Shown one piece after another: positions 37,684 through 47,781 of a stretch of DNA of 64,000 nt. The notes under the pieces were generated by a model. That model did no database searches, was not told the origin of the DNA, and saw nothing but the letters and a program-made list of their open reading frames with translations. The stretch lies in the sequence record LR588166.1; one strand, written 5' to 3'. The position numbers and the translations under genes were made by a program. Every line of letters begins with the position of its first letter. The first letter of the stretch is position 1.

Positions 37684-39174
37684 ATGAAACTATTTGAAGT
37701 GTTTACTTTATATGAAGATAAAGCAGAACTGATTGTGAAAAATCAAGGACCCAAACTCCTTACTGCTGCTAAAAATTATGGATCGAATATTCGTACGGCT
37801 GAAGAAATAATGAATGTTCTTAAGAGTGCAGATCCTACATCTAATCAGACATATTTGCAATGGATTACTAATAGATTTATTGCAGGTGAATTTAGATTAG
37901 AAGATACTAATAGAATAAGGGCAGAGCTTATATCATTCGAAAGATATAAACGTGTTTTACCGAAAAAAGATATAAATCAGTATAAAACACTAGGAGAATT
38001 GTATGCAGTAATTGACCCATTAAATGACGCAGCACCAGGCAACGATCTGATTGGTGTATCTAATAAACAAGTTAAAAAGCATGCATATAATGCCAAACGC
38101 CAAGAATTAATTTCGTCTGGTCAAGCAGATGTAATTTATAAAGGCCAAGAAGGAATGCTAGTTAATCCCAAAACAGAAGATGCAGCAATATTCTTTGGTC
38201 AAGGAACTAGGTGGTGTACCGCAGCAACTAGTAGTGATAATATGTTTAGTCACTACCATAGTCAGGGACCGTTATATACTTGGTTAGGTTCTGATGGATT
38301 CAAAGCACAATTCCATTTAGAAACTAATCAATGGATGGATTCAAAAGACGAGCCTTTAGACGACGCTCAAATGTCTAAGCTATTGTTAATTCCTATAATT
38401 AAAAAATTGTACGACGACGGTATAATTAAATCTGAGAAATCACTTCTCGGCGACCGCGGCGGCTTCGATGACGAATATGATAATAGACTATCGGATGACT
38501 ATTATTTCGACATGTGGGCTGATCGAAAATACCGTATCAAACAACATATCGAGAAACACGGCATGTCTGAGAATTTAATAGATACACTTTCTGTTAAAGA
38601 TCCTTTATTACCGTTGTTTGTTTTGCCAGAATACTCAAAATACCCTGCGTCGAAATCACTCGATGATTATTTTTTAAAATTATCCAAAATAGAACCGCTC
38701 GACCAATATAAAGAGATAAATGGGTATTTTGAAAGTGATATGTTACTTCGATTAACTAGATACCTTGAAGATTCTACAGGGTCTCATTCTAAATCTTTAG
38801 ATGATGCTGGATTTAATTTTGTTCGTCGATTACTGGACATAGGCGGAAAGGATTTTGATTTAATAATATCGAACTATCTAAAACATGTAGCTGAGAATTC
38901 TAAAACAAAACAATACCTTCTGTCTAATCTTCCGTTAGCTGTTGAGATTGCTAATTCGATCGAATGGCCAGAACTTATGACAGCAATTGAGCATGAGCTT
39001 AGCAATGCTAAAACACCAAAAGAAGAGAACGATGCAATAAAACTAGGCAGTGATTTAATGTTTAAATCTAATAGCCTGCCTGTATCTAAATGGTTTATTA
39101 ATTTACTTAAAACTACAGATGCAGGTAAACGATACTTATCATCATTACCTGAGTATGACAACACAAAACAATAA
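37684..39174 (+). CDS. Hypothetical protein, probably virion-associated
   Basis: ADPT.N..YL.WI; LP.KDINQYK; GTRWCTA; CTAAATA late-type motif upstream. Confidence 0.6.
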   Translation: MKLFEVFTLYEDKAELIVKNQGPKLLTAAKNYGSNIRTAEEIMNVLKSADPTSNQTYLQWITNRFIAGEFRLEDTNRIRAELISFERYKRVLPKKDINQYKTLGELYAVIDPLNDAAPGNDLIGVSNKQVKKHAYNAKRQELISSGQADVIYKGQEGMLVNPKTEDAAIFFGQGTRWCTAATSSDNMFSHYHSQGPLYTWLGSDGFKAQFHLETNQWMDSKDEPLDDAQMSKLLLIPIIKKLYDDGIIKSEKSLLGDRGGFDDEYDNRLSDDYYFDMWADRKYRIKQHIEKHGMSENLIDTLSVKDPLLPLFVLPEYSKYPASKSLDDYFLKLSKIEPLDQYKEINGYFESDMLLRLTRYLEDSTGSHSKSLDDAGFNFVRRLLDIGGKDFDLIISNYLKHVAENSKTKQYLLSNLPLAVEIANSIEWPELMTAIEHELSNAKTPKEENDAIKLGSDLMFKSNSLPVSKWFINLLKTTDAGKRYLSSLPEYDNTKQ

Positions 39175-39202
39175 ATACAATTAAAGTTTTGAGGTAAGAA
39201 TT

Positions 39203-40693
39203 TTGATTAATTATAACAGAACTGCTAAAAAAATATTTTCTGTATTAAAAGGGCACAGCTATCGGGTTAAAATGTATGACCTAACAGGCAATGAGGTGAT
39301 AGACCCGGAAAAAGCTCGTCGATTTTATGTTCAATATCCGAACATGATGATAACACTAGATGAAGACACTGGTGAAATTCGTATGAGCAAAAACAATAAT
39401 ATTTCTTTAACTGAATACGAAAGTACATTAGTTCAGTTAAAGAACATAGCAGTTCATTACATGCTAAATTTTACCTTGAAAGACTTCGGGAGAGAAATAA
39501 CACCGAGAGATTTTGCATACCAAGCAAAAGTTAAAAAGGAAAAAGAAATGTCTAACGGATCTGTATCTGAATCTATATCTCCTCTAGTTGGTTCTAGAAA
39601 AACAAGTTATCAAACAATAGAAAATGTTAAAATACATGTAAAGCATAAGACACATGTCGACGAAGAGATTAGGGGAGCTCGTTCTAGAAATATTTCTGCA
39701 ATTTTTATAGAACACTCGGGAGAAAGATTTCGTTTTCCTCACAATAATTTAGTTGGTGCCCGCGCCATGGCAAGGCATATACAGCAAGGCGGTAATCAAT
39801 ACGATTCGATTGGTTCTTATATAATAGAAAGCTGTGCTAACTATACTAAGTTAAGAGAATTTATGAGATATATTCGTTCTAACAATCTTATAACAGAAGA
39901 TAGCAACGATGTTATTGCTAATATTAAGGAAAGCATAGATAGTATAGCTACAGATTTAAAACGTCTATCTGGTGTAAATACCTACGATATAGTAAAATCT
40001 AGGATCGAAGAAACAGAAGAAGCAGAATGCGATGTGTCTGATGTAGATAAGTTTAAGGATATGTTTACTATTCGTAAGTTTGATGATAAGTTTACTGATG
40101 TTCTTCCTATAGTGAGTAAACTCGTTAAGGAAAAACAATCATATTTAAAGAAAATAGAAGAAGCAGTTTCTAAACAAATTTATATAGAGTCTATGCCTAT
40201 TTTAGAAACTAATGCTATAATATATGAAAATCCTAATATTAAGTTAGGACATAGCTTACAAGAACTTAGTTCTAGAATATTAGAAAATACATTATTAGCT
40301 AATTATATTTCGTCGATGGGATCTAAGTTAATAAAAGAAAATACTTTAAATAAATTCGAATGTTCTATAATTAAATCATTTTTTGAAAACGTTAGTGTTA
40401 AAAAAGCAAATACTAATCAAACTAATGGGTTATTTGCAGAATCGATTAACGAATTTGGGATAAATATTCCTGACTTCCCGGATAATAATCCCTTTAATAA
40501 AAATAAAGACAACAAATACAGTAATTCGGATTTAGATAAACACGCATCTGATCAAAAAGTAGATGCAAATGACACTGTCTCTAAAATTGATTTTATTATA
40601 AGCAATAGCCACGGAAGATATAATGACAGAGAAAAATTACTAAAATTGCCAGATGATGTTATTAACAGAATATATTCTAAAATTGCTAAATAA
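39203..40693 (+). CDS. Conserved structural protein
   Basis: GSRKTSYQ; RSRNI.AIFIE..GERFRF..NNL.GARAMARH; ATAAATA upstream. Confidence 0.6.
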   Translation: MINYNRTAKKIFSVLKGHSYRVKMYDLTGNEVIDPEKARRFYVQYPNMMITLDEDTGEIRMSKNNNISLTEYESTLVQLKNIAVHYMLNFTLKDFGREITPRDFAYQAKVKKEKEMSNGSVSESISPLVGSRKTSYQTIENVKIHVKHKTHVDEEIRGARSRNISAIFIEHSGERFRFPHNNLVGARAMARHIQQGGNQYDSIGSYIIESCANYTKLREFMRYIRSNNLITEDSNDVIANIKESIDSIATDLKRLSGVNTYDIVKSRIEETEEAECDVSDVDKFKDMFTIRKFDDKFTDVLPIVSKLVKEKQSYLKKIEEAVSKQIYIESMPILETNAIIYENPNIKLGHSLQELSSRILENTLLANYISSMGSKLIKENTLNKFECSIIKSFFENVSVKKANTNQTNGLFAESINEFGINIPDFPDNNPFNKNKDNKYSNSDLDKHASDQKVDANDTVSKIDFIISNSHGRYNDREKLLKLPDDVINRIYSKIAK

Positions 40694-40892: not shown

Positions 40893-41879
40893 ATGGCTTC
40901 TCTTGCTGAACTACGTCAAAAATTAAAAGATCAAGAAACAAAACGTGGCACAAAATCATCTGGCAGTGCAGATAAAAGTAATTTCCCATTCTGGGACATG
41001 AATGAAAACGACAGTGCTACTGTAAGATTTCTTCCTGATGCAAACACTGATAATACCTTTTTCTGGGTAGAAAAACAACAAATTAAAATTCCATTTAGTG
41101 GCATTGTAGGTATGAATAGTAAACCTACAGTTGTTACTGTACCGTGTGTAGAAATGTGGGGGGAATCTTGCCCTATTCATCAAGAAATCCGTCCGTGGTT
41201 TAAAGATCCTTCGTTAGAGAAATTAGCGCGTACTTATTGGAAGAAACGTTCTTATATTTTCCAAGGACTTGTTCGTAAGTCACCTCTTGTAGAACAAGAA
41301 CTACCAGAGAATCCTATTCGCAAATTTACATTCGGAAGTCAGATTTTTAATCTAGTTAAATCGTCTCTATTAGACCCCGAAATGGAAAACATTCCCACTG
41401 ATTATTTAAATGGTACTGATTTCCAGATAACTAAATTAATGAAGGGCCAATATGCCGATTACGCTACATCTAAATGGGCAAGGAAAGAATCTTCGTTAAC
41501 TGAAGAAGAATTCCAGGCAATCCAAACATATGGTCTGTATGATTTAAGTAAATTTTTACCTGCTAAACCTGATGCAGAAGCATTAGCTGCTATATTCGAG
41601 ATGTTCGAAGAATCAGTGGAAGGTAAAGAATATGATCCGCAGCGTTGGGGGAAATACTATCGCCCTTACGGGGTTGAAGTTCCTACTAATACTTCCGTAA
41701 GTGTACCTGTATCTAAACCAGAACCTAAGACTACGGTATCTAGTTCTTCAGTTATAGAAGACGATAACGATGATCTTCCTTGGGAAGATACTACTAAACC
41801 TGTAGAGCCTGTCAAATCTGCTTCTAATGCGCAAGATATAATTGCGCTCATCCGCGCCCGCCAAAACAGCGGCAACTAA
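40893..41879 (+). CDS. gp32: Single-stranded DNA-binding protein
   Basis: FPFW; VRFLPD; VPC.EMWG..CP; YWKKRSY.FQG; PTDY..G.DF...K..KG.YADY..S.W; acidic tail. Confidence 0.9.
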   Translation: MASLAELRQKLKDQETKRGTKSSGSADKSNFPFWDMNENDSATVRFLPDANTDNTFFWVEKQQIKIPFSGIVGMNSKPTVVTVPCVEMWGESCPIHQEIRPWFKDPSLEKLARTYWKKRSYIFQGLVRKSPLVEQELPENPIRKFTFGSQIFNLVKSSLLDPEMENIPTDYLNGTDFQITKLMKGQYADYATSKWARKESSLTEEEFQAIQTYGLYDLSKFLPAKPDAEALAAIFEMFEESVEGKEYDPQRWGKYYRPYGVEVPTNTSVSVPVSKPEPKTTVSSSSVIEDDNDDLPWEDTTKPVEPVKSASNAQDIIALIRARQNSGN

Positions 41880-41884
41880 ATAGG

Positions 41885-41912
41885 GAGAGGGGATCGCTGA
41901 TCCCCTCTCTTT
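41885..41912 (+). terminator. Intrinsic terminator
   Basis: GAGAGGGGATC-GCT-GATCCCCTCTC-TTT. Confidence 0.8.
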
Positions 41913-41985
41913 AATATAACCTAAAATAGCCAAAAAGTACAACTACAATGTTGGAAGGACGGCAGTATTATAAAAAGGACATTTT

Positions 41986-42231
41986 ATGACAAAACCATTC
42001 GATATTTCTAAATTTAGAAAAGATATTACTAAAAGTATCACTGGCATTAGTACAGGATTCAATGACCCAACTATTTGGATTAGTACCGGCAACTATACAC
42101 TTAATTATCTCATTAGTAGCGATTTTAATAAAGGCGTACCTATGGGTAAAGTAACCATGTTTGCTGGCGAGTCGGGTTGTTTGCCTGAAACTGCTAAAGT
42201 GAAAATTAGACTATCTAAGAAGCAATCTTAA
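41986..42231 (+). CDS. uvsX: UvsX/RecA recombinase N-extein (64 aa) fused to a 17-aa split-intein N-fragment
   Basis: ISTGNYTLNYLISSDFNKGVP.GKVTMFAGESG followed by CLPETAKVKIRL (intein block A, Cys1 at 42178). Confidence 0.9.
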   Translation: MTKPFDISKFRKDITKSITGISTGFNDPTIWISTGNYTLNYLISSDFNKGVPMGKVTMFAGESGCLPETAKVKIRLSKKQS

Positions 42232-42240
42232 CTGTCCAGT

Positions 42241-42283
42241 GTCTCCGTCGAGGATAAATACTTTTATCTAAAACGGAGACTTT
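42241..42283 (+). promoter_or_regulatory. RBS-sequestering hairpin with internal late promoter
   Basis: GTCTCCGT (42241-48) pairs with ACGGAGAC (42273-80), which contains GGAG; ATAAATA at 42254-60. Confidence 0.7.
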
Positions 42284-43717
42284 ATGGGAAATTACAATGT
42301 TCTTTCTACAAAAAACTTTAAGAAGCTATGTAATGAGTTAAACATAGTAACGATATCAGAAAAGTACATTTCTGATATACGTAAGATAGAAGATTCTGCT
42401 AAGAGCAAAGTGGATTCTGCATCTCAGCGTATGATATTAACTATGATAACTGTGAAAGTTCCCGACTTATATGATGCATATAACAGATACTATCAGCTCA
42501 GAACAGATGGTATTAGTACAAAAACTCAAGACAGTATTTCTTATATTTTTGGAAAAGACTTCCTCGAATCTGTTAATTTACTAATCAGTAATAGATATAA
42601 AACTGCATTCCGTAAAGGAATGACAGTGGAAGAGGCATTTATAACACGTAATAAAGACTTTTCCAATAATGGTGTGTATTATAACCAGATGACTGATAAG
42701 CAAAAGAAACGTTTATCATTATTGCTTAGTGTGTATACACCAGAAAGGTTGGAGTTTTATAAAAAGACAATTTCGTTTTTTATTAAGTTAGATTTGACTA
42801 ATTATGCAGGAAGAATGAAAAGACTGATGAAACTGGGATCTAGTACGTCTTTATATGCTAGCGTATTACGGTATGGTAAATCTGTCGGAAAAAGCACACA
42901 TTCATCTGTATCTGCGGTAAAGAGAAACTATTTGCCTACTTCGATACAATATTGGATGGCAAAGGGGTTTGATGAAGATACTGCATTAGTGAAGATAAAC
43001 GAACATCAACAGAAAGCAAGTGCCATGTCTTCCAAAAAACTAAAAGGCACTAGCGAATACTCTGTTCGATCAGTTGCATATTGGATTAAAAACGGGTATA
43101 GCGAAGAAGAGGCAAAAGGGAAAGTATCTAATATACAGAATACTTGGAAAAATGTATCTCAAGAAGAGCGTGATCGAAGAATAGAATCGTGGATGACTAC
43201 AATGAGTCTTAAAACAGACGAGGAGAAATCTTTGATAAACCTTAAAAAAACTCACAGCCCGGAAGGGATAATGGCAAGGACAAATTGCGATTATGATATT
43301 GCATTTAAGCAAAGCGTTGATTTTTTTAAGAAACGAAATAATTCTTCTAAAGTATCTCAAGAACTATTTTGGGGAATTGCCGAGGATATCGATACCGATG
43401 GAGTTTACTTTTCTGAACTAAACTACGAATACCCTGTTATGGGGAAAATAGTAGATTTCTATGATTCTAAAAGCAAAACAGTAATCGAATTTTATGGAAA
43501 CTTTTGGCATGCAGATAGTACATATACTGATGACACACTGATATATGGAAAAACTGCTAAAGAAATAAGAGAATCGGACATTTACAGAGAAACGTTAATT
43601 AGATCATCTGATTTGGTTAGTGATTTTATAGTAGTTTGGGAAAAGGACTTTAGGAAGAATCCGAAAGAAACAATTAAAAATTTAGTTAATATTTTAAATA
43701 ATAAAAGGAAATTTTAA
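42284..43717 (+). CDS. Free-standing Vsr/DUF559-like homing endonuclease between the split-intein halves
   Basis: C-terminal SK.SQ.LF...E......VDFY......IEFYGNFWHA...VWE.D; N-terminal repeats S..YW..KG..E..A. Confidence 0.75.
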   Translation: MGNYNVLSTKNFKKLCNELNIVTISEKYISDIRKIEDSAKSKVDSASQRMILTMITVKVPDLYDAYNRYYQLRTDGISTKTQDSISYIFGKDFLESVNLLISNRYKTAFRKGMTVEEAFITRNKDFSNNGVYYNQMTDKQKKRLSLLLSVYTPERLEFYKKTISFFIKLDLTNYAGRMKRLMKLGSSTSLYASVLRYGKSVGKSTHSSVSAVKRNYLPTSIQYWMAKGFDEDTALVKINEHQQKASAMSSKKLKGTSEYSVRSVAYWIKNGYSEEEAKGKVSNIQNTWKNVSQEERDRRIESWMTTMSLKTDEEKSLINLKKTHSPEGIMARTNCDYDIAFKQSVDFFKKRNNSSKVSQELFWGIAEDIDTDGVYFSELNYEYPVMGKIVDFYDSKSKTVIEFYGNFWHADSTYTDDTLIYGKTAKEIRESDIYRETLIRSSDLVSDFIVVWEKDFRKNPKETIKNLVNILNNKRKF

Positions 43718-43720
43718 TAA

Positions 43721-44992
43721 ATGGAATACATCGAAAAGGAAGTAACAGTTAGTGAACTGAAGTCTCTCTACAGTAGTAATGAATACGAAATTGAGTTAGA
43801 CACACCAGATGGCTGGCAAAAACTGGGATCTTGGTTCGATAAAGGCCCTCTTAGTATGGTGACGGTAGAAACGCAGGATGGGTTAGTTACTAGATGTGCA
43901 GTAAACCATATGATCGAAGTGGTAGACGGATCGGAAACTTTTTGGACACTTGCAAAAGACTTGTACGAAGGCCAACAAGTGCTTACTGTAAACGGTGTCT
44001 CAACAATTAGTTCTGTAACTGAAAGTGGCATCGAAGAATGTTTCGATTTCGAAATACTCCACGAAAATCATCGTTACTATGGTGATGGATTCTCTTCTCA
44101 CAATAGTGGCAAATCGTATATAGTATCAGGAAACATTGTAAAAGATGCACAAGAAAAGGGAATTTTTGTTGTATTACTTGATTCAGAAAATGCACTCGAC
44201 GAATCTTGGCTACATGCACTAGGTGTAGACACCGGACCGGAAAAAATGTTACGCATCTCTGTATCGATGATAGATGATGTAGCAAAAATTATTAGTGATT
44301 TTGTTAAAGATTACAAGACTAATTATGCCGAACTACCTAACAATGATCGACCAAAGGTGCTTTTTGTTATTGACTCGCTCGGAATGTTATTGACACCAAC
44401 GGAAACTGCACAATTTCAAAATGGTGATATGAAAGGAGATATGGGCAGGAAAGCAAAACAATTAAAAGCATTGATTTCTAACTGTACAAATATGTTCGGC
44501 AACTTAGACATAGGCCTTGTTTGTACTAACCATACATATGCATCTCAAGATTTATTTCAGCCTGACGCTGTAATTTCAGGCGGCAGTGGCGCAGTCTATG
44601 CCGCGTCAATTGTAGTGGCAATGCAAAAGTTAAAGTTAAAAGAAGACGAAGCAGGTAATAAAATTTCTGAAGTAGCTGGTATTCGTGCAGTATGCAAAGT
44701 TGTAAAATCTCGATATGCAAAGCCGTTTGAGACAGTAAAAGTAAATATTCCATATGATACAGGTATGAGTCCAATATCAGGTCTATTTGACTTGTTTGAA
44801 AAAACAGGTAAACTTGTAAAACAAGGCAATAGATATAAGTACATAACCAAAGATGGTACCGAAATGCTGTATTATAGGAAAGAATGGAATGATTACGATA
44901 AACTAAAAGTAATTATGAATGAATTTACAGACGAAGACCTAGGCAATGTCGTAGAAGTGGAAGAGGGTCATTTAGAAGAGTTCGATGAATAA
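43721..44992 (+). CDS. uvsX: Split-intein C-fragment (128 aa) fused to the UvsX/RecA C-extein
   Basis: TRCAVNHM (block B), CFDFEI...HRYY.DGFSSHN|S (blocks F/G), then SGKSYIVSG; DSENAL; FVIDSLGML; SGGSG..YAASIVVAM.K.KLKE. Confidence 0.92.
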   Translation: MEYIEKEVTVSELKSLYSSNEYEIELDTPDGWQKLGSWFDKGPLSMVTVETQDGLVTRCAVNHMIEVVDGSETFWTLAKDLYEGQQVLTVNGVSTISSVTESGIEECFDFEILHENHRYYGDGFSSHNSGKSYIVSGNIVKDAQEKGIFVVLLDSENALDESWLHALGVDTGPEKMLRISVSMIDDVAKIISDFVKDYKTNYAELPNNDRPKVLFVIDSLGMLLTPTETAQFQNGDMKGDMGRKAKQLKALISNCTNMFGNLDIGLVCTNHTYASQDLFQPDAVISGGSGAVYAASIVVAMQKLKLKEDEAGNKISEVAGIRAVCKVVKSRYAKPFETVKVNIPYDTGMSPISGLFDLFEKTGKLVKQGNRYKYITKDGTEMLYYRKEWNDYDKLKVIMNEFTDEDLGNVVEVEEGHLEEFDE

Positions 44993-46820
44993 ATTATGCG
45001 AAACAGATCGTATTAATATTATCAAATTACACTTCGATGATTTAAAATCTGTATCTGAATTAAAGCAAATATACGGAGTCTCTTATGATGTCATTAAAAC
45101 CATCATAAGAGATGAAACGAATCGTCTACCGTTACAAGAAACTGATATAAAAATTTTGAAATTTAAAAAACTTGTTTCACAGGAGTTGTTATTTGAATTA
45201 CATGTAATTAAAAAACAATCATTTAATGAAATAAGAAAAACTTATAAGATTAATGAACTTCATTTAAAACAAGTGTTTAATGATTACGGAATACCAATTG
45301 AAAAGTGTTTATATACTGCTACTAACAAGAAGCGTAAAACAAAAAAGCCTGAAGATTTTACTAAAGACTTTTTCGAACACTTAGTATATAACGAAAGACG
45401 AACAATTAGTTGGATAAAAAATAATTATAACTTTAATTATGAAGAACTAAAAAATCATTTAACACATTTAAAAATCGATTATACTAATTCGTTGCCACCT
45501 GCTGTAAAACATCAACAAGATAAAATATCTAGAGAAACCCTAGCAGAAGAATTAAAAATTAAATCTATTGTTGATATAATAAATGAATACGGAATTTCGA
45601 GAACTTATGTAGAAAGCGTTATAAAAGAATACAATATACAGTATTTTACAAAACCGAAACATTCTATATTAAGTGGTAAAGAATCAGAAATTTATCGGAT
45701 GTATTATGATGAATGTATGACTACATACCAAATAGCAGAAAAATTGGGAGTATGTCAATACACCATATGGAAAATAATGGCAGATAACGGATGGAAAACA
45801 CGAGAACCGATTAAAAAAATTGATTTGATTTGGAATGATATAAAAGAAGAAGTTGTTAAATTAATAGACAACGGTTATACATTAGCTGCTTTATGTGAAA
45901 AATACGAAATAACATCTATTACTGAAAAGTTAATAGAAGAAGGTATAAAATATACAAAGGGAAATATTTCTTCTGGTCATGCAGAAATATCTGAATATGT
46001 GCGTTCATTGGGATTTAATGTAATCGACAATGATCGTACTATTATATTTCCGCGAGAAATTGATATTTTTATTCCCGAACTTAACATAGGAATAGAATAC
46101 AACGGATTATATTTTCATAGCACACGAACAGAAGGAAATGTAACAAAGCATAGAGAAAAATATAGCATATGTAAACAAAAAGGTATTCGTTTAATACAAA
46201 TTTTTGAAGATGAATTTATTCATAAGAAAGAACTAGTAAAGAGAAAATTAGCACACATTTTAGGAAAATCTAATAATAAATGCTATGCAAGAAATTGTAT
46301 AGTTAAAGAAATAACGGTAGCAGATAAACGAAATTTCTTTAAAAAATATCACATACAAGAAGATTCTGCATCCTCATATGCATATGGACTATATTATGAT
46401 AACGAATTAGTTTGTGCTATGTCTTTTCTTAAAAAGAAGAAATGTACAGAATTAGTTAGATATGCATCTTCTATGCACGTGATAGGCGGATTTTCTAAGT
46501 TGTTGAAATATTGTATTAATAATAACAAAATAGATGTTATAAACACATATGCTGATCTCAGATGGTCGAATCCGACAAATAATGTATATGTAAACAATGG
46601 GTTTGATATACTGTATGAGACTGATTTTAATTACACTTATGTGAGTAAAGAGGATTTTTCAAAAAGGCTTAATAGGCAAAAATTTATGAAACACAAGTTG
46701 AAAAACATTTTATCAGATTTCGATAAATCATTAACAGAAGAAGAGAATATGAAAAATAATGGATTTTATCGAGTATACGATGCTGGCCATTTAAAATTGC
46801 AATATAAGGTTAATAAATGA
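44985..46820 (+). CDS. Homing-endonuclease-like protein: tandem HTH repeats, Vsr/DUF559-like nuclease and GNAT/Mom-like domain
   Basis: EIDIFIPELNIGIEYNGLYFHS; RLIQIFEDE; ELVRYAS...GGFSKL; TYADLRWS; paralogous to 28621-30237. Confidence 0.75.
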   Translation: MNKLCETDRINIIKLHFDDLKSVSELKQIYGVSYDVIKTIIRDETNRLPLQETDIKILKFKKLVSQELLFELHVIKKQSFNEIRKTYKINELHLKQVFNDYGIPIEKCLYTATNKKRKTKKPEDFTKDFFEHLVYNERRTISWIKNNYNFNYEELKNHLTHLKIDYTNSLPPAVKHQQDKISRETLAEELKIKSIVDIINEYGISRTYVESVIKEYNIQYFTKPKHSILSGKESEIYRMYYDECMTTYQIAEKLGVCQYTIWKIMADNGWKTREPIKKIDLIWNDIKEEVVKLIDNGYTLAALCEKYEITSITEKLIEEGIKYTKGNISSGHAEISEYVRSLGFNVIDNDRTIIFPREIDIFIPELNIGIEYNGLYFHSTRTEGNVTKHREKYSICKQKGIRLIQIFEDEFIHKKELVKRKLAHILGKSNNKCYARNCIVKEITVADKRNFFKKYHIQEDSASSYAYGLYYDNELVCAMSFLKKKKCTELVRYASSMHVIGGFSKLLKYCINNNKIDVINTYADLRWSNPTNNVYVNNGFDILYETDFNYTYVSKEDFSKRLNRQKFMKHKLKNILSDFDKSLTEEENMKNNGFYRVYDAGHLKLQYKVNK

Positions 46821-47017
46821 TTACAGATGTTGAAGCAATAAATGAAATTTGGGCTGCCGTGCGACCATATATTAAGTCATCTGAGCGCATTCATGCAGCG
46901 GATGCGTTTATAGAAGTTTTAGATGAATACGGAATGCTTGATGTAGATATTCAAATGTTTGAAAAAGAACTTAAAATAGCAGCAAAAACACATTTAGGTG
47001 AAGTAGATGACGACTAA
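46817..47017 (+). CDS. Small hypothetical protein
   Basis: ATGA overlap; acidic 66-aa ORF. Confidence 0.6.
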   Translation: MITDVEAINEIWAAVRPYIKSSERIHAADAFIEVLDEYGMLDVDIQMFEKELKIAAKTHLGEVDDD

Positions 47018-47333
47018 TTTAGAATTTAGTGACGAATTTCTATCAACTGTATCGTCGTTGAAAGCCAATATAACATCCAAAAATAAAGATGCTGTCATAG
47101 AACAATTAGACAAATTGTTAGATATGGTAACAAAAGATATGAATGCAGTTATATGGGTAATACAACCTGAAAATATTAATAACCTACATATACTATGTTC
47201 CGATTCATTTAATATTCCTATTAGTCAATTTAGACTAAAACGAAGAATACCGTCAAAATCTCAACGAGCTCATTTATTTTTAAAAGTAATTAGGATTGCA
47301 CTTGCTGGAAAAGAAAATGAACAATTGGTATAA
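47007..47333 (+). CDS. Hypothetical protein
   Basis: Overlapping ORF in the operon. Confidence 0.5.
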   Translation: MTTNLEFSDEFLSTVSSLKANITSKNKDAVIEQLDKLLDMVTKDMNAVIWVIQPENINNLHILCSDSFNIPISQFRLKRRIPSKSQRAHLFLKVIRIALAGKENEQLV

Positions 47334-47781
47334 CATTGTCTATGCAGATTTATCTAAGATACCCGATTTCATTTCTTTTTTCGAAAAGGAAATAGATATT
47401 TCTAAGTCTACAGAAATGTCTTTAAAGGGTAAAACTTTAGAGAAACATTGCGCAGAGTTGCCGGGTATAGTGGAGAATAGATTTGCACAGCTTCAAGAAA
47501 TTGAAGCTGTACTAGAATTACTTAATATTCAGTATAAACAAGAAAAAAGCGACAGATTCAAATTTTATCTACAGCAGTTTCCTAAAGCACTTTCTTCTAG
47601 GGATGCAGAGAAATATGCAGAAGGAGATCCACTTGTAGTGAACAGGGCAATATTAGTTAATGAAGTTGCATTGCTAAGAAACAAATATCTTTCGCTAATG
47701 AAGGGTTTAGATTCTAAGAATTGGATGGTAGGCCACATAGTTAAACTTCGTTGTGCAGGACTAGACGACGCACAAATTTAA
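47317..47781 (+). CDS. uvsY: UvsY-like recombination mediator
   Basis: Helical; LSSRDAEKY.EGD..V...KGLD.K.W.VGHIVKLR.AGL; lies between uvsX and uvsW. Confidence 0.7.
   Translation: MNNWYNIVYADLSKIPDFISFFEKEIDISKSTEMSLKGKTLEKHCAELPGIVENRFAQLQEIEAVLELLNIQYKQEKSDRFKFYLQQFPKALSSRDAEKYAEGDPLVVNRAILVNEVALLRNKYLSLMKGLDSKNWMVGHIVKLRCAGLDDAQI

Follow-up and report, generated by a model that had tools for sequence, protein, structure and literature searches.

A VidaL-type split intein and a Vsr-like endonuclease gene in the fractured uvsX gene of Pseudomonas aeruginosa phage MIJ3

In the fractured genes described by Dassa et al. (2009; PMC2677866), among which gp41-1, NrdJ-1, IMPDH-1 and others, co-oriented halves of a host gene occur in a phage setting. 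A free-standing and often Vsr-like endonuclease gene lies between the intein halves, a hairpin spans the 5' untranslated region of the endonuclease gene, and the downstream half takes its start region from the 3' end of that gene. The VidaL intein is naturally split and cysteine-dependent. It has an N-piece of 16 amino acids, is split at the S1 site, right after beta-strand 2, and has a half-life (t1/2) of ~1 min at 37 °C (PMC13014065). It has already been applied in semisynthesis and in live-cell protein editing (PMC13014065; PMC11185735). Here we describe a locus that shares features with both systems. In the window, i.e. the whole stretch of 64,000 nucleotides of sequence record LR588166.1 (Pseudomonas jumbo phage vB_PaeM_MIJ3, below MIJ3) that was analysed, the gene for the recombinase UvsX was found to be broken into two open reading frames (ORFs) by a split intein with an N-piece of 17 amino acids, with an endonuclease gene in between. 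The fractured uvsX gene is very probably rebuilt by protein trans-splicing of this VidaL-type split intein.

The MIJ3 locus resembles the genes of Dassa et al. in each of the features listed above. However, UvsX is not among the eight host enzymes of these fractured genes (PMC2677866), and the Gp41-1, Gp41-8 and NrdJ-1 inteins are treated as canonically split, with an N-piece of ~100 and a C-piece of ~35-50 amino acids (PMC13014065), unlike the MIJ3 intein. Furthermore, the MIJ3 endonuclease ORF stops 3 nucleotides before the downstream ORF, without the overlap seen in the Dassa genes, whereas two relatives (loci L004 and L006) do show overlap. AceL-TerL (25 amino acids), GOS-TerL (37 amino acids) and PolB16 OarG (15 amino acids) are likewise naturally split inteins with a short N-piece and a phage or metagenomic source, but they reside in other host genes. 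AceL-TerL and GOS-TerL are split at S2, after the first helix, unlike the S1 split of MIJ3, and PolB16 OarG lacks a catalytic cysteine (Ser1, Ser+1), unlike MIJ3 with its Cys1. The kind of element is well known, but the locus itself is unreported within the searchable literature: no description of it was found in literature on UvsX and inteins or on phage PA5oct and inteins, in the genome paper on MIJ3, DNA polymerase B (orf153-155) is the only place for which a split intein is reported (PMC6892783), and the PA5oct omics paper makes no mention of inteins, recombinases or endonucleases. The features of the locus are as follows, with their basis in brackets.

41986-42177, + strand: uvsX N-extein, residues 1-64, ending in ...KVTMFAGESG, the first half of Walker A (PHROG 97 match)
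42178-42231, + strand: intein N-piece of 17 amino acids (CLPETAKVKIRLSKKQS) plus TAA stop codon (alignment to the VidaL crystal construct)
42235-42288, + strand: RNA hairpin 5' of the endonuclease gene (minimum free energy, z-score against shuffles)
42284-43717, + strand: free-standing homing endonuclease gene of 477 amino acids, ORF2 (family alignment, fold model)
43718-43720, + strand: second TAA stop codon, between ORF2 and ORF3 (direct sequence reading)
43721-44104, + strand: intein C-piece of 128 amino acids, with block B (..CAVNH63), block F (C107-F-D109-F) and block G (S-H127-N128) (match to VidaL 6vgv_A)
44105-44992, + strand: uvsX C-extein of 295 amino acids, from the +1 Ser (SGKSYIVSG..., the second half of Walker A) (PHROG 97, Pfam RecA)
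44985-46820, + strand: second homing endonuclease gene, of the Hef-like kind, adjacent to but outside the split intein, with an 8-nucleotide overlap with the uvsX stop (phrog_3339)

ORF1 (41986-42231, 81 amino acids) ends in FAGESG/CLPETAKVKIRLSKKQS and a stop codon, while ORF3 (43721-44992, 423 amino acids) starts with MEYIEKEVTV... and reads GDGFSSHN/SGKSYIVSG at residues 121-137. ORF2 and ORF3 share one frame (43721-42284 = 1437 = 3 x 479) and are separated by TAA TAA at 43715-43720. In PHROG 97, the profile of UvsX-like recombinases, residues 1-65 of ORF1 match positions 14-84 and residues 128-396 of ORF3 match positions 83-445; as these positions follow on each other, ORF1 and ORF3 abut exactly in the UvsX profile, and the layout is not a product of chance. 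Pfam RecA matches residues 125-350 of ORF3 (2.2e-10), and the C-extein shares 57-65 % identity with the UvsX proteins of jumbo phages, Rak2-like ones among them. The nearest intein-free UvsX proteins, those of Pectobacterium phage CBB and Vibrio phage 2.275.O, to which the C-extein is 60-65 % identical, have FAGESGAGKSYIVSG at the junction, and the N-extein aligns with their N-termini. The Walker A motif GxxxxGK[ST] is complete only after joining of the two halves (GESG/SGKS in MIJ3, versus GESGAGKS in CBB and Vibrio 2.275.O). The joined UvsX would comprise 359 amino acids, the sum of 64 and 295 residues.

The C-piece of the intein matched VidaL (6vgv_A/6vgw) in the PDB with E=1.7e-35, far above other structures, and 63 of the 123 aligned columns are identical (51 %). 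With the last 25 residues of ORF1 as a query, the single PDB match below E=10 was the N-terminus of the same 6vgv_A chain, a match that is weak alone (E=1.8). Compared to the VidaL construct, the N-piece is identical at 12 of 18 positions, or at 9 of 15 within the intein. The VidaL chain starts with ESG-A-LPKEAVVQIRLTKK and ends with ...GDGIVSH-A-SGK, the MIJ3 counterparts being ESG-C-LPETAKVKIRLSKK and ...GDGFSSH-N-SGK. These chain ends indicate that the crystal construct keeps its native exteins ESG and SGK while its catalytic Cys1 and Asn have been mutated. Since the flanking residues are the same, VidaL occupies the same P-loop site in the same kind of protein. Its assignment to UvsX was derived from the extein residues of the PDB construct and from the name 'VidaL UvsX-2', under which a VidaL intein from a Lake Vida metagenome was described. 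Judged by its sequence, the MIJ3 intein is an allele of the VidaL family at the same UvsX P-loop site and no new split type. Both share the flanking ESG/.../SGK, the S1 split, Cys1 and Ser+1, with N-pieces of 17 (MIJ3) and 16 (VidaL) amino acids. They differ in about half of their residues and by an insertion of three residues after block B (VVDGSE). The MIJ3 intein also differs from VidaL in that it comes from P. aeruginosa phages that are in culture and genetically tractable, and that its endonuclease gene and genomic context are known.

The residues needed for splicing are all in place. The nucleophiles are Cys1 (CLPET...) and Ser+1 (HN/SGKS). CLP opens every N-piece of the family that was examined, each family copy has the +1 Ser directly behind HN, and the family alignment (A3) shows no variation at H63, D109, H127 or N128 of the C-piece. 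Block B reads TxCAxNH, with Ala instead of Thr at -3, as it does in VidaL.

The original prediction for this DNA, made from the sequence alone, had placed the break of uvsX within the Walker A loop, and both the collinearity with PHROG 97 and the intein-free relatives bear this out. Its coordinates and ORF ends, the endonuclease of 477 amino acids in the same frame as ORF3, and the TAA TAA in between are all present in the sequence. Its description of the intein as split right after block A, with an N-fragment of 17 amino acids, agrees with the S1 position of VidaL. Two of the checks proposed with it were carried out, namely alignment to uvsX of phages without the insert, which found the gene of CBB and Vibrio 2.275.O uninterrupted at the junction, and alignment to known split inteins, which yielded VidaL. 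The prediction went too far in suggesting that the intein may be a new tool: the intein belongs to the VidaL family itself, with the same host protein, the same insertion site and family N-pieces of 15-17 amino acids, and that tool exists already. As a tool, the MIJ3 intein would at most be one more, possibly orthogonal, VidaL variant.

Homologues of the intein were found in several states. A database search with the C-piece yielded 15 proteins. Eight of these start with the C-piece (413-456 amino acids), and the remaining seven are contiguous, combining UvsX with a mini-intein at the same site (six of 497-509 amino acids and one, truncated, of 456). A scan of IMG/VR yielded 52 loci, all with SGKS... 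at the start of the C-extein: 28 contiguous, 13 split with an ORF2-family gene between the pieces, nine split with a gap of 29-251 nucleotides and two truncated. Members of the family are 42-60 % identical. The N-piece measures 15-17 amino acids in the 18 split IMG/VR relatives in which it was found, and 15-16 amino acids in L004 and L006. The layout of three ORFs with the same endonuclease family was also found in L004, L006, the P0025 contig and L069, besides the 13 IMG/VR loci. In the nine split loci without an endonuclease gene (L021, L022, L025, L037, L038, L041, L046, L049 and L050), seven gaps were inspected and remnants of the endonuclease 3' end were recognisable in five (L025, L037, L046, L041 and L049), for instance VIEFYGDFFHRNP...VVWESDYRRNP in the gap of L025. 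The split form is therefore viable by itself and outlasts the endonuclease. These splits without an endonuclease argue strongly that trans-splicing, rather than the intervening DNA, makes the gene work.

Contiguous UvsX P-loop mini-inteins of the type found in gp204 of Salicola phage SCTP-2 have the same insertion site. They are uninterrupted, measure 133-148 residues (IMG/VR and SCTP-2 copies) and lack an endonuclease; they presumably represent the state before invasion. SCTP-2 is the single close match among cultured phages outside Wroclawvirus, its intein being contiguous and 52 % identical to the MIJ3 C-piece. Gene 204 of SCTP-2 (L007 2743-4713, labelled 'hypothetical protein') encodes a UvsX with two contiguous inteins, the second of which is located at ...KISGG/C; the metagenomic protein P0035 also has an intein at that site. 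The intein tree was poorly resolved. An approximately unbiased (AU) test rejected monophyly of the split form (p=0.005), a result that carries little weight in view of the 121 columns and possible recombination; as a lead it hints that the split was gained or lost repeatedly.

Variation among closely related phages was analyzed as well. The 3.2-kb region is 99.4-99.6 % identical in ten other Wroclawvirus records (PA5oct (two), 30-2, 30-3, Deifobo, Paride, Cassandra, Ettore, Callisto and PAC2). In an alignment of ten Wroclawvirus genomes over 41900-45100, 11 variable sites were counted in the N-extein and 23 in the C-extein. All 34 are synonymous, the UvsX proteins are 100 % identical and the three ORFs are intact in each genome. 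With 34 synonymous and no amino acid changes, both UvsX halves are evidently under strong purifying selection, which argues that the fractured gene works. The intein span (42178-44104, 1,927 bp) has just two variable sites, none of them in the C-piece. Both are singleton amino acid changes in ORF2, A118T (Ettore) and S302L (PAC2). The density of variable sites differs between exteins and cassette (Fisher's exact p=1.5e-13). A comparison of three genomes over 9.2 kb gave 1-2.5 % variable sites in neighbour genes, 1.4 % in the Hef-like gene and 0 % in the cassette. The near-invariant block begins within 13 nucleotides of the first codon of the intein and ends within ~105 nucleotides of its last. 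As its diversity is far below that of the flanks, the cassette is either much younger than the flanks or homogenised across the population. This is the pattern expected from recent homing of intein and endonuclease as one unit, and it argues for a cassette that spread recently; a sweep with flanking recombination is an alternative.

The course of events proposed from these data starts with a mini-intein located within the uvsX codons for the P-loop. This intein would have been invaded at S1, the loop after the second beta-strand, by a free-standing Vsr-like (EDxHD-type) homing endonuclease gene, which would have broken uvsX into two co-oriented ORFs. Precursor 1 (81 amino acids) would consist of UvsX residues 1-64 and the N-piece of 17 amino acids, and precursor 2 (423 amino acids) of the C-piece of 128 amino acids and UvsX residues 65-359. 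The two intein pieces would associate and complete the HINT fold. Class-1 trans-splicing would then proceed via a Cys1 thioester, chain transfer to Ser+1 and cyclisation of Asn128. The expected product is UvsX of 359 amino acids with an intact Walker A (GESGSGKS), recognisable by the junction tryptic peptide VTMFAGESGSGK. The endonuclease would serve its own spread, and the hairpin would hide its ribosome-binding site, probably holding translation low. We infer that splicing takes place in infected cells. The idea, already put forward in the original prediction, that recombinase production needs trans-splicing is well, if indirectly, supported by the intact catalytic residues, the 51 % identity to VidaL, for which trans-splicing is known from experiments, and the strict purifying selection on both UvsX halves.

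ORF2 itself appears to consist of two parts. The N-terminal ~370 amino acids were predicted to be all-helical, with two YW(I/M)xxG(F/Y) repeats (residues 223 and 266), and are presumably DNA-binding. The C-terminal nuclease domain comprises residues ~370-477. An alignment of 18 homologues (A1) showed D391, E402, G405 and H409 to be invariant and D432, R435, W452 and E453 to be near-invariant. Vsr-like 'EDxHD' homing endonucleases are described as having such a pattern, in which Asp is followed by Glu, by His seven residues after this Glu, and by a second Asp (Dassa et al. PMC2677866; Taylor et al. PMC3239194), and the spacing of 7 from E402 to H409 equals that from F62 to H69 in Vsr (PMC2677866). 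PF18741 was matched by 7 of the 18 family members and DUF559 by four. Homologues are few (23 at E<=1e-3), two of them being named 'very short patch repair endonuclease/protein' at the source. All homologues of at least 35 % identity whose context was examined lie within fractured uvsX loci, and two more distant relatives that were looked up are free-standing elsewhere. The GC content of ORF2 is not distinct from that of the genome.

A model of the nuclease domain (residues 345-477; predicted local distance difference test score, pLDDT, 93.8) matched the folds of 1vsr (TM 0.52/0.52), 1cw0_A (TMq 0.57) and the nuclease domains of PvuRts1I and AbaSI. Three mitoribosomal chains, which we take to be RAP-domain proteins with a Vsr-like fold, ranked highest. 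With the full-length model as the query, the helical N-terminus dominates the matches and Vsr is found at an E of about 2; the domain alone gave a cleaner result. The family profile matched in the PDB only the DUF559-like 3hrl, below threshold (E=0.34), over the catalytic motif. I-Bth0305I (3R3P) gave no sequence or profile match to ORF2 in the PDB and was absent from the top 50 fold matches. The sole link of ORF2 to the EDxHD family in comparisons of this kind is an hhalign match to the neighbouring Hef-like endonuclease (E=6.4e-4, probability 28 %). ORF2 shares several features with I-Bth0305I and the EDxHD enzymes, including those of the Hef type (PMC3239194): the C-terminal nuclease with the D391/E402/H409/D432 signature and a Vsr-like fold, a helical N-terminal region with repeated motifs, and recombinase genes as targets (putative for ORF2). 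I-Bth0305I, of ~266 amino acids, is located within a group I intron of recA, whereas ORF2, of 477 amino acids, lies within an intein. A Vsr-like nuclease domain, as had been proposed for the gene between the uvsX halves, is supported by the catalytic motif, the Pfam matches of relatives and the fold model; strict membership of the EDxHD family is probable. That the endonuclease is active, and what it cuts, is inferred.

The hairpin preceding ORF2 has a core stem in which 42241-42248 pairs with 42273-42280. Its minimum free energy is -22.8 kcal/mol (z = -4.18), and none of 200 shuffled sequences was as stable. The 3' arm holds a Shine-Dalgarno sequence, GGAG (42275-42278), 5 nucleotides before the ORF2 ATG at 42284. 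Hairpins of different sequence were found at the equivalent place in L004 (z -8.4) and L006 (z -5.6). Such a hairpin is known for 15 of 16 fractured-gene endonucleases and attenuates translation in phage Aeh1 (PMC2677866). Inside the MIJ3 hairpin, ATAAATAC is present at 42254-42261; GATAAATA agrees with 7 of the 8 positions of the T4-type late promoter TATAAATA, and ATAAATA is common to the three hairpins examined. Promoters of PA5oct have been reported to be sigma-70-like, TATAATA/TTGAC (PA5oct omics paper). A scan for sigma-70 promoters and terminators gave background levels only.

Several observations weigh against the picture of a fractured gene served by trans-splicing and a Vsr-like homing endonuclease. 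The PA5oct orthologue of ORF3 carries the note ESI-MS/MS (electrospray ionisation with tandem mass spectrometry) in GenBank and was hence detected as a protein, but this flag cannot separate precursor from spliced product. The Shine-Dalgarno-like AGGA of ORF3 is rather distant, ~11 nucleotides 5' of its ATG. ORF2 itself has no sequence match in Pfam, PHROG or the PDB, so that its link to Vsr consists of motifs, Pfam matches of relatives and fold matches, and the Foldseek E-values of the domain matches are modest (0.035-0.27). Finally, the late-promoter-like motif (TATAAATA / ATAAATAC) is not enriched in the window, and the ATAAATA of the hairpins is without statistical support.

Trans-splicing might also be conditional, the split intein acting as a post-translational switch for the timing or dose of UvsX, for instance in response to redox state or DNA damage, and not as a neutral parasite. 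Inteins do cluster in recombinase P-loops, Cys1 is redox-sensitive and fixation of the cassette extends to all of the 11 sequenced relatives; moreover, environmental regulation is reported for a RadA intein in the ATPase domain (PMC4513877). However, nothing in the sequence requires such a switch. A selfish element with an ordinary life-cycle would account for the endonuclease and its remnants and for the relatives in which the intein is contiguous or absent, and VidaL has been reported to be fast and constitutive in vitro (PMC13014065). A regulatory role is accordingly considered unlikely.

The two halves could instead assemble non-covalently through the intein pieces and function without ligation. 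A precedent is the split NrdA of phage Aeh1, a fractured gene reported to be rescued by interaction domains instead of splicing (PMC3045599). In MIJ3, however, the break lies inside the P-loop (GESG/SGKS), where a folded intein of ~145 residues would have to stay, and the conservation of all splicing residues would be needless for mere docking. We regard assembly of this kind as very unlikely.

It is barely credible that a group I or II intron takes the intervening 1.5 kb out of the RNA, or that translational bypass skips it, so that a contiguous intein splices in cis. The strong hairpin right after the ORF1 stop would suit such a scheme. Against it, Rfam searched at a permissive threshold over 41800-45200 yielded no intron family, just one chance snoRNA match. 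All three ORFs start and stop by themselves, and ORF2 has a Shine-Dalgarno sequence of its own. In the relatives that lack an endonuclease gene, stop and start codons are still separate, and the gaps between them, of 29-251 nucleotides, leave no room for an intron. VidaL, the homologue at the same site, has been reported to be naturally split and active in trans (PMC13014065). Lastly, that the endonuclease insertion inactivated uvsX, its pieces decaying while recombination proceeds via other proteins, would fit the label 'hypothetical protein' of ORF1 in most GenBank records but can scarcely be reconciled with the exclusively synonymous extein differences in ten genomes without frameshift or stop, with catalytic intein residues that are invariant in a family of such low identity, or with an arrangement kept in dozens of unrelated viral contigs.

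Within the preferred reading, trans-splicing of a VidaL-type intein, it is conceivable, though doubtful, that the whole cassette is a currently active mobile unit in the population of PA5oct-like phages, homing as a single block into uvsX P-loops, and that the S1 split arose or reverted more than once. Repeated splitting or reversion at S1 may have occurred because that loop tolerates invasion. If this is true, these cultured phages would be the first in which the life-cycle that an atypically split intein has in nature, comprising invasion, splitting, endonuclease decay and possibly re-fusion, could be followed in the laboratory.

No new mechanism is revealed by this locus. It does provide the widely used, ultra-short VidaL-type intein with a natural home in cultured phages infecting the laboratory strain PAO1 (MIJ3, PA5oct, Paride and eight other records), where natural trans-splicing, homing and fitness effects are directly testable rather than inferred from metagenomes. 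The series from intein-free via contiguous and split with endonuclease to split with remnants would explain the 'atypical' split site: S1 would be the insertion point of one lineage of free-standing endonuclease genes. Dozens of natural variants with an N-piece of 15-17 amino acids can be screened for orthogonality or speed. In the 11 GenBank records, ORF1 and ORF2 are mostly labelled 'hypothetical protein', and ORF3 'RecA', 'UvsX-like recombinase' or, in PA5oct, 'structural protein (ESI-MS/MS)'. The annotation of these records is corrected by the present analysis; some of the phages are studied as therapy candidates.

In PA5oct the gp32-like protein bears the same note as the ORF3 orthologue (L002 4822-6093, 'structural protein', ESI-MS/MS). 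The label may be misleading; otherwise, virion preparations contain recombination proteins as cargo or as contaminants. A second fractured gene of MIJ3 encodes DNA polymerase B (orf153-155) and combines a split intein with an HNH endonuclease, and the closest contiguous relative of this intein is found in SCTP-2 (PMC6892783). As SCTP-2 has relatives of both the uvsX and the PolB intein, MIJ3 and SCTP-2 share two intein families.

The Hef-like gene downstream of uvsX (44985-46820) matches phrog_3339 (1.1e-94), has helix-turn-helix domains and shows a weak match to MTES_1575. With this second one adjoining, two endonuclease genes beset the uvsX of MIJ3. The Hef-like gene and two small ORFs (46817-47333) part uvsX from a uvsY-like gene (47317-47781), which directly follows uvsX in CBB and Vibrio 2.275.O and is 45 % identical to the Vibrio phage gene. 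Upstream of uvsX lies the gene of a gp32-like single-stranded DNA-binding protein (40893-41879). Right after it, at 41885-41909 of the window, an 11-bp GC-rich palindrome (GAGAGGGGATC...GATCCCCTCTC) is followed by TTTAATAT on the + strand. This palindrome is terminator-like and would part the gp32 and uvsX transcription units. Further upstream, the 3' end of MIJ3_00046 (window 38900-39190) is very different in PA5oct and Paride, with 66 % of the columns differing, and an indel of ~80 nucleotides is located at about 40527, within the 'structural protein' gene 39203-40693; both are mosaic boundaries near the locus.

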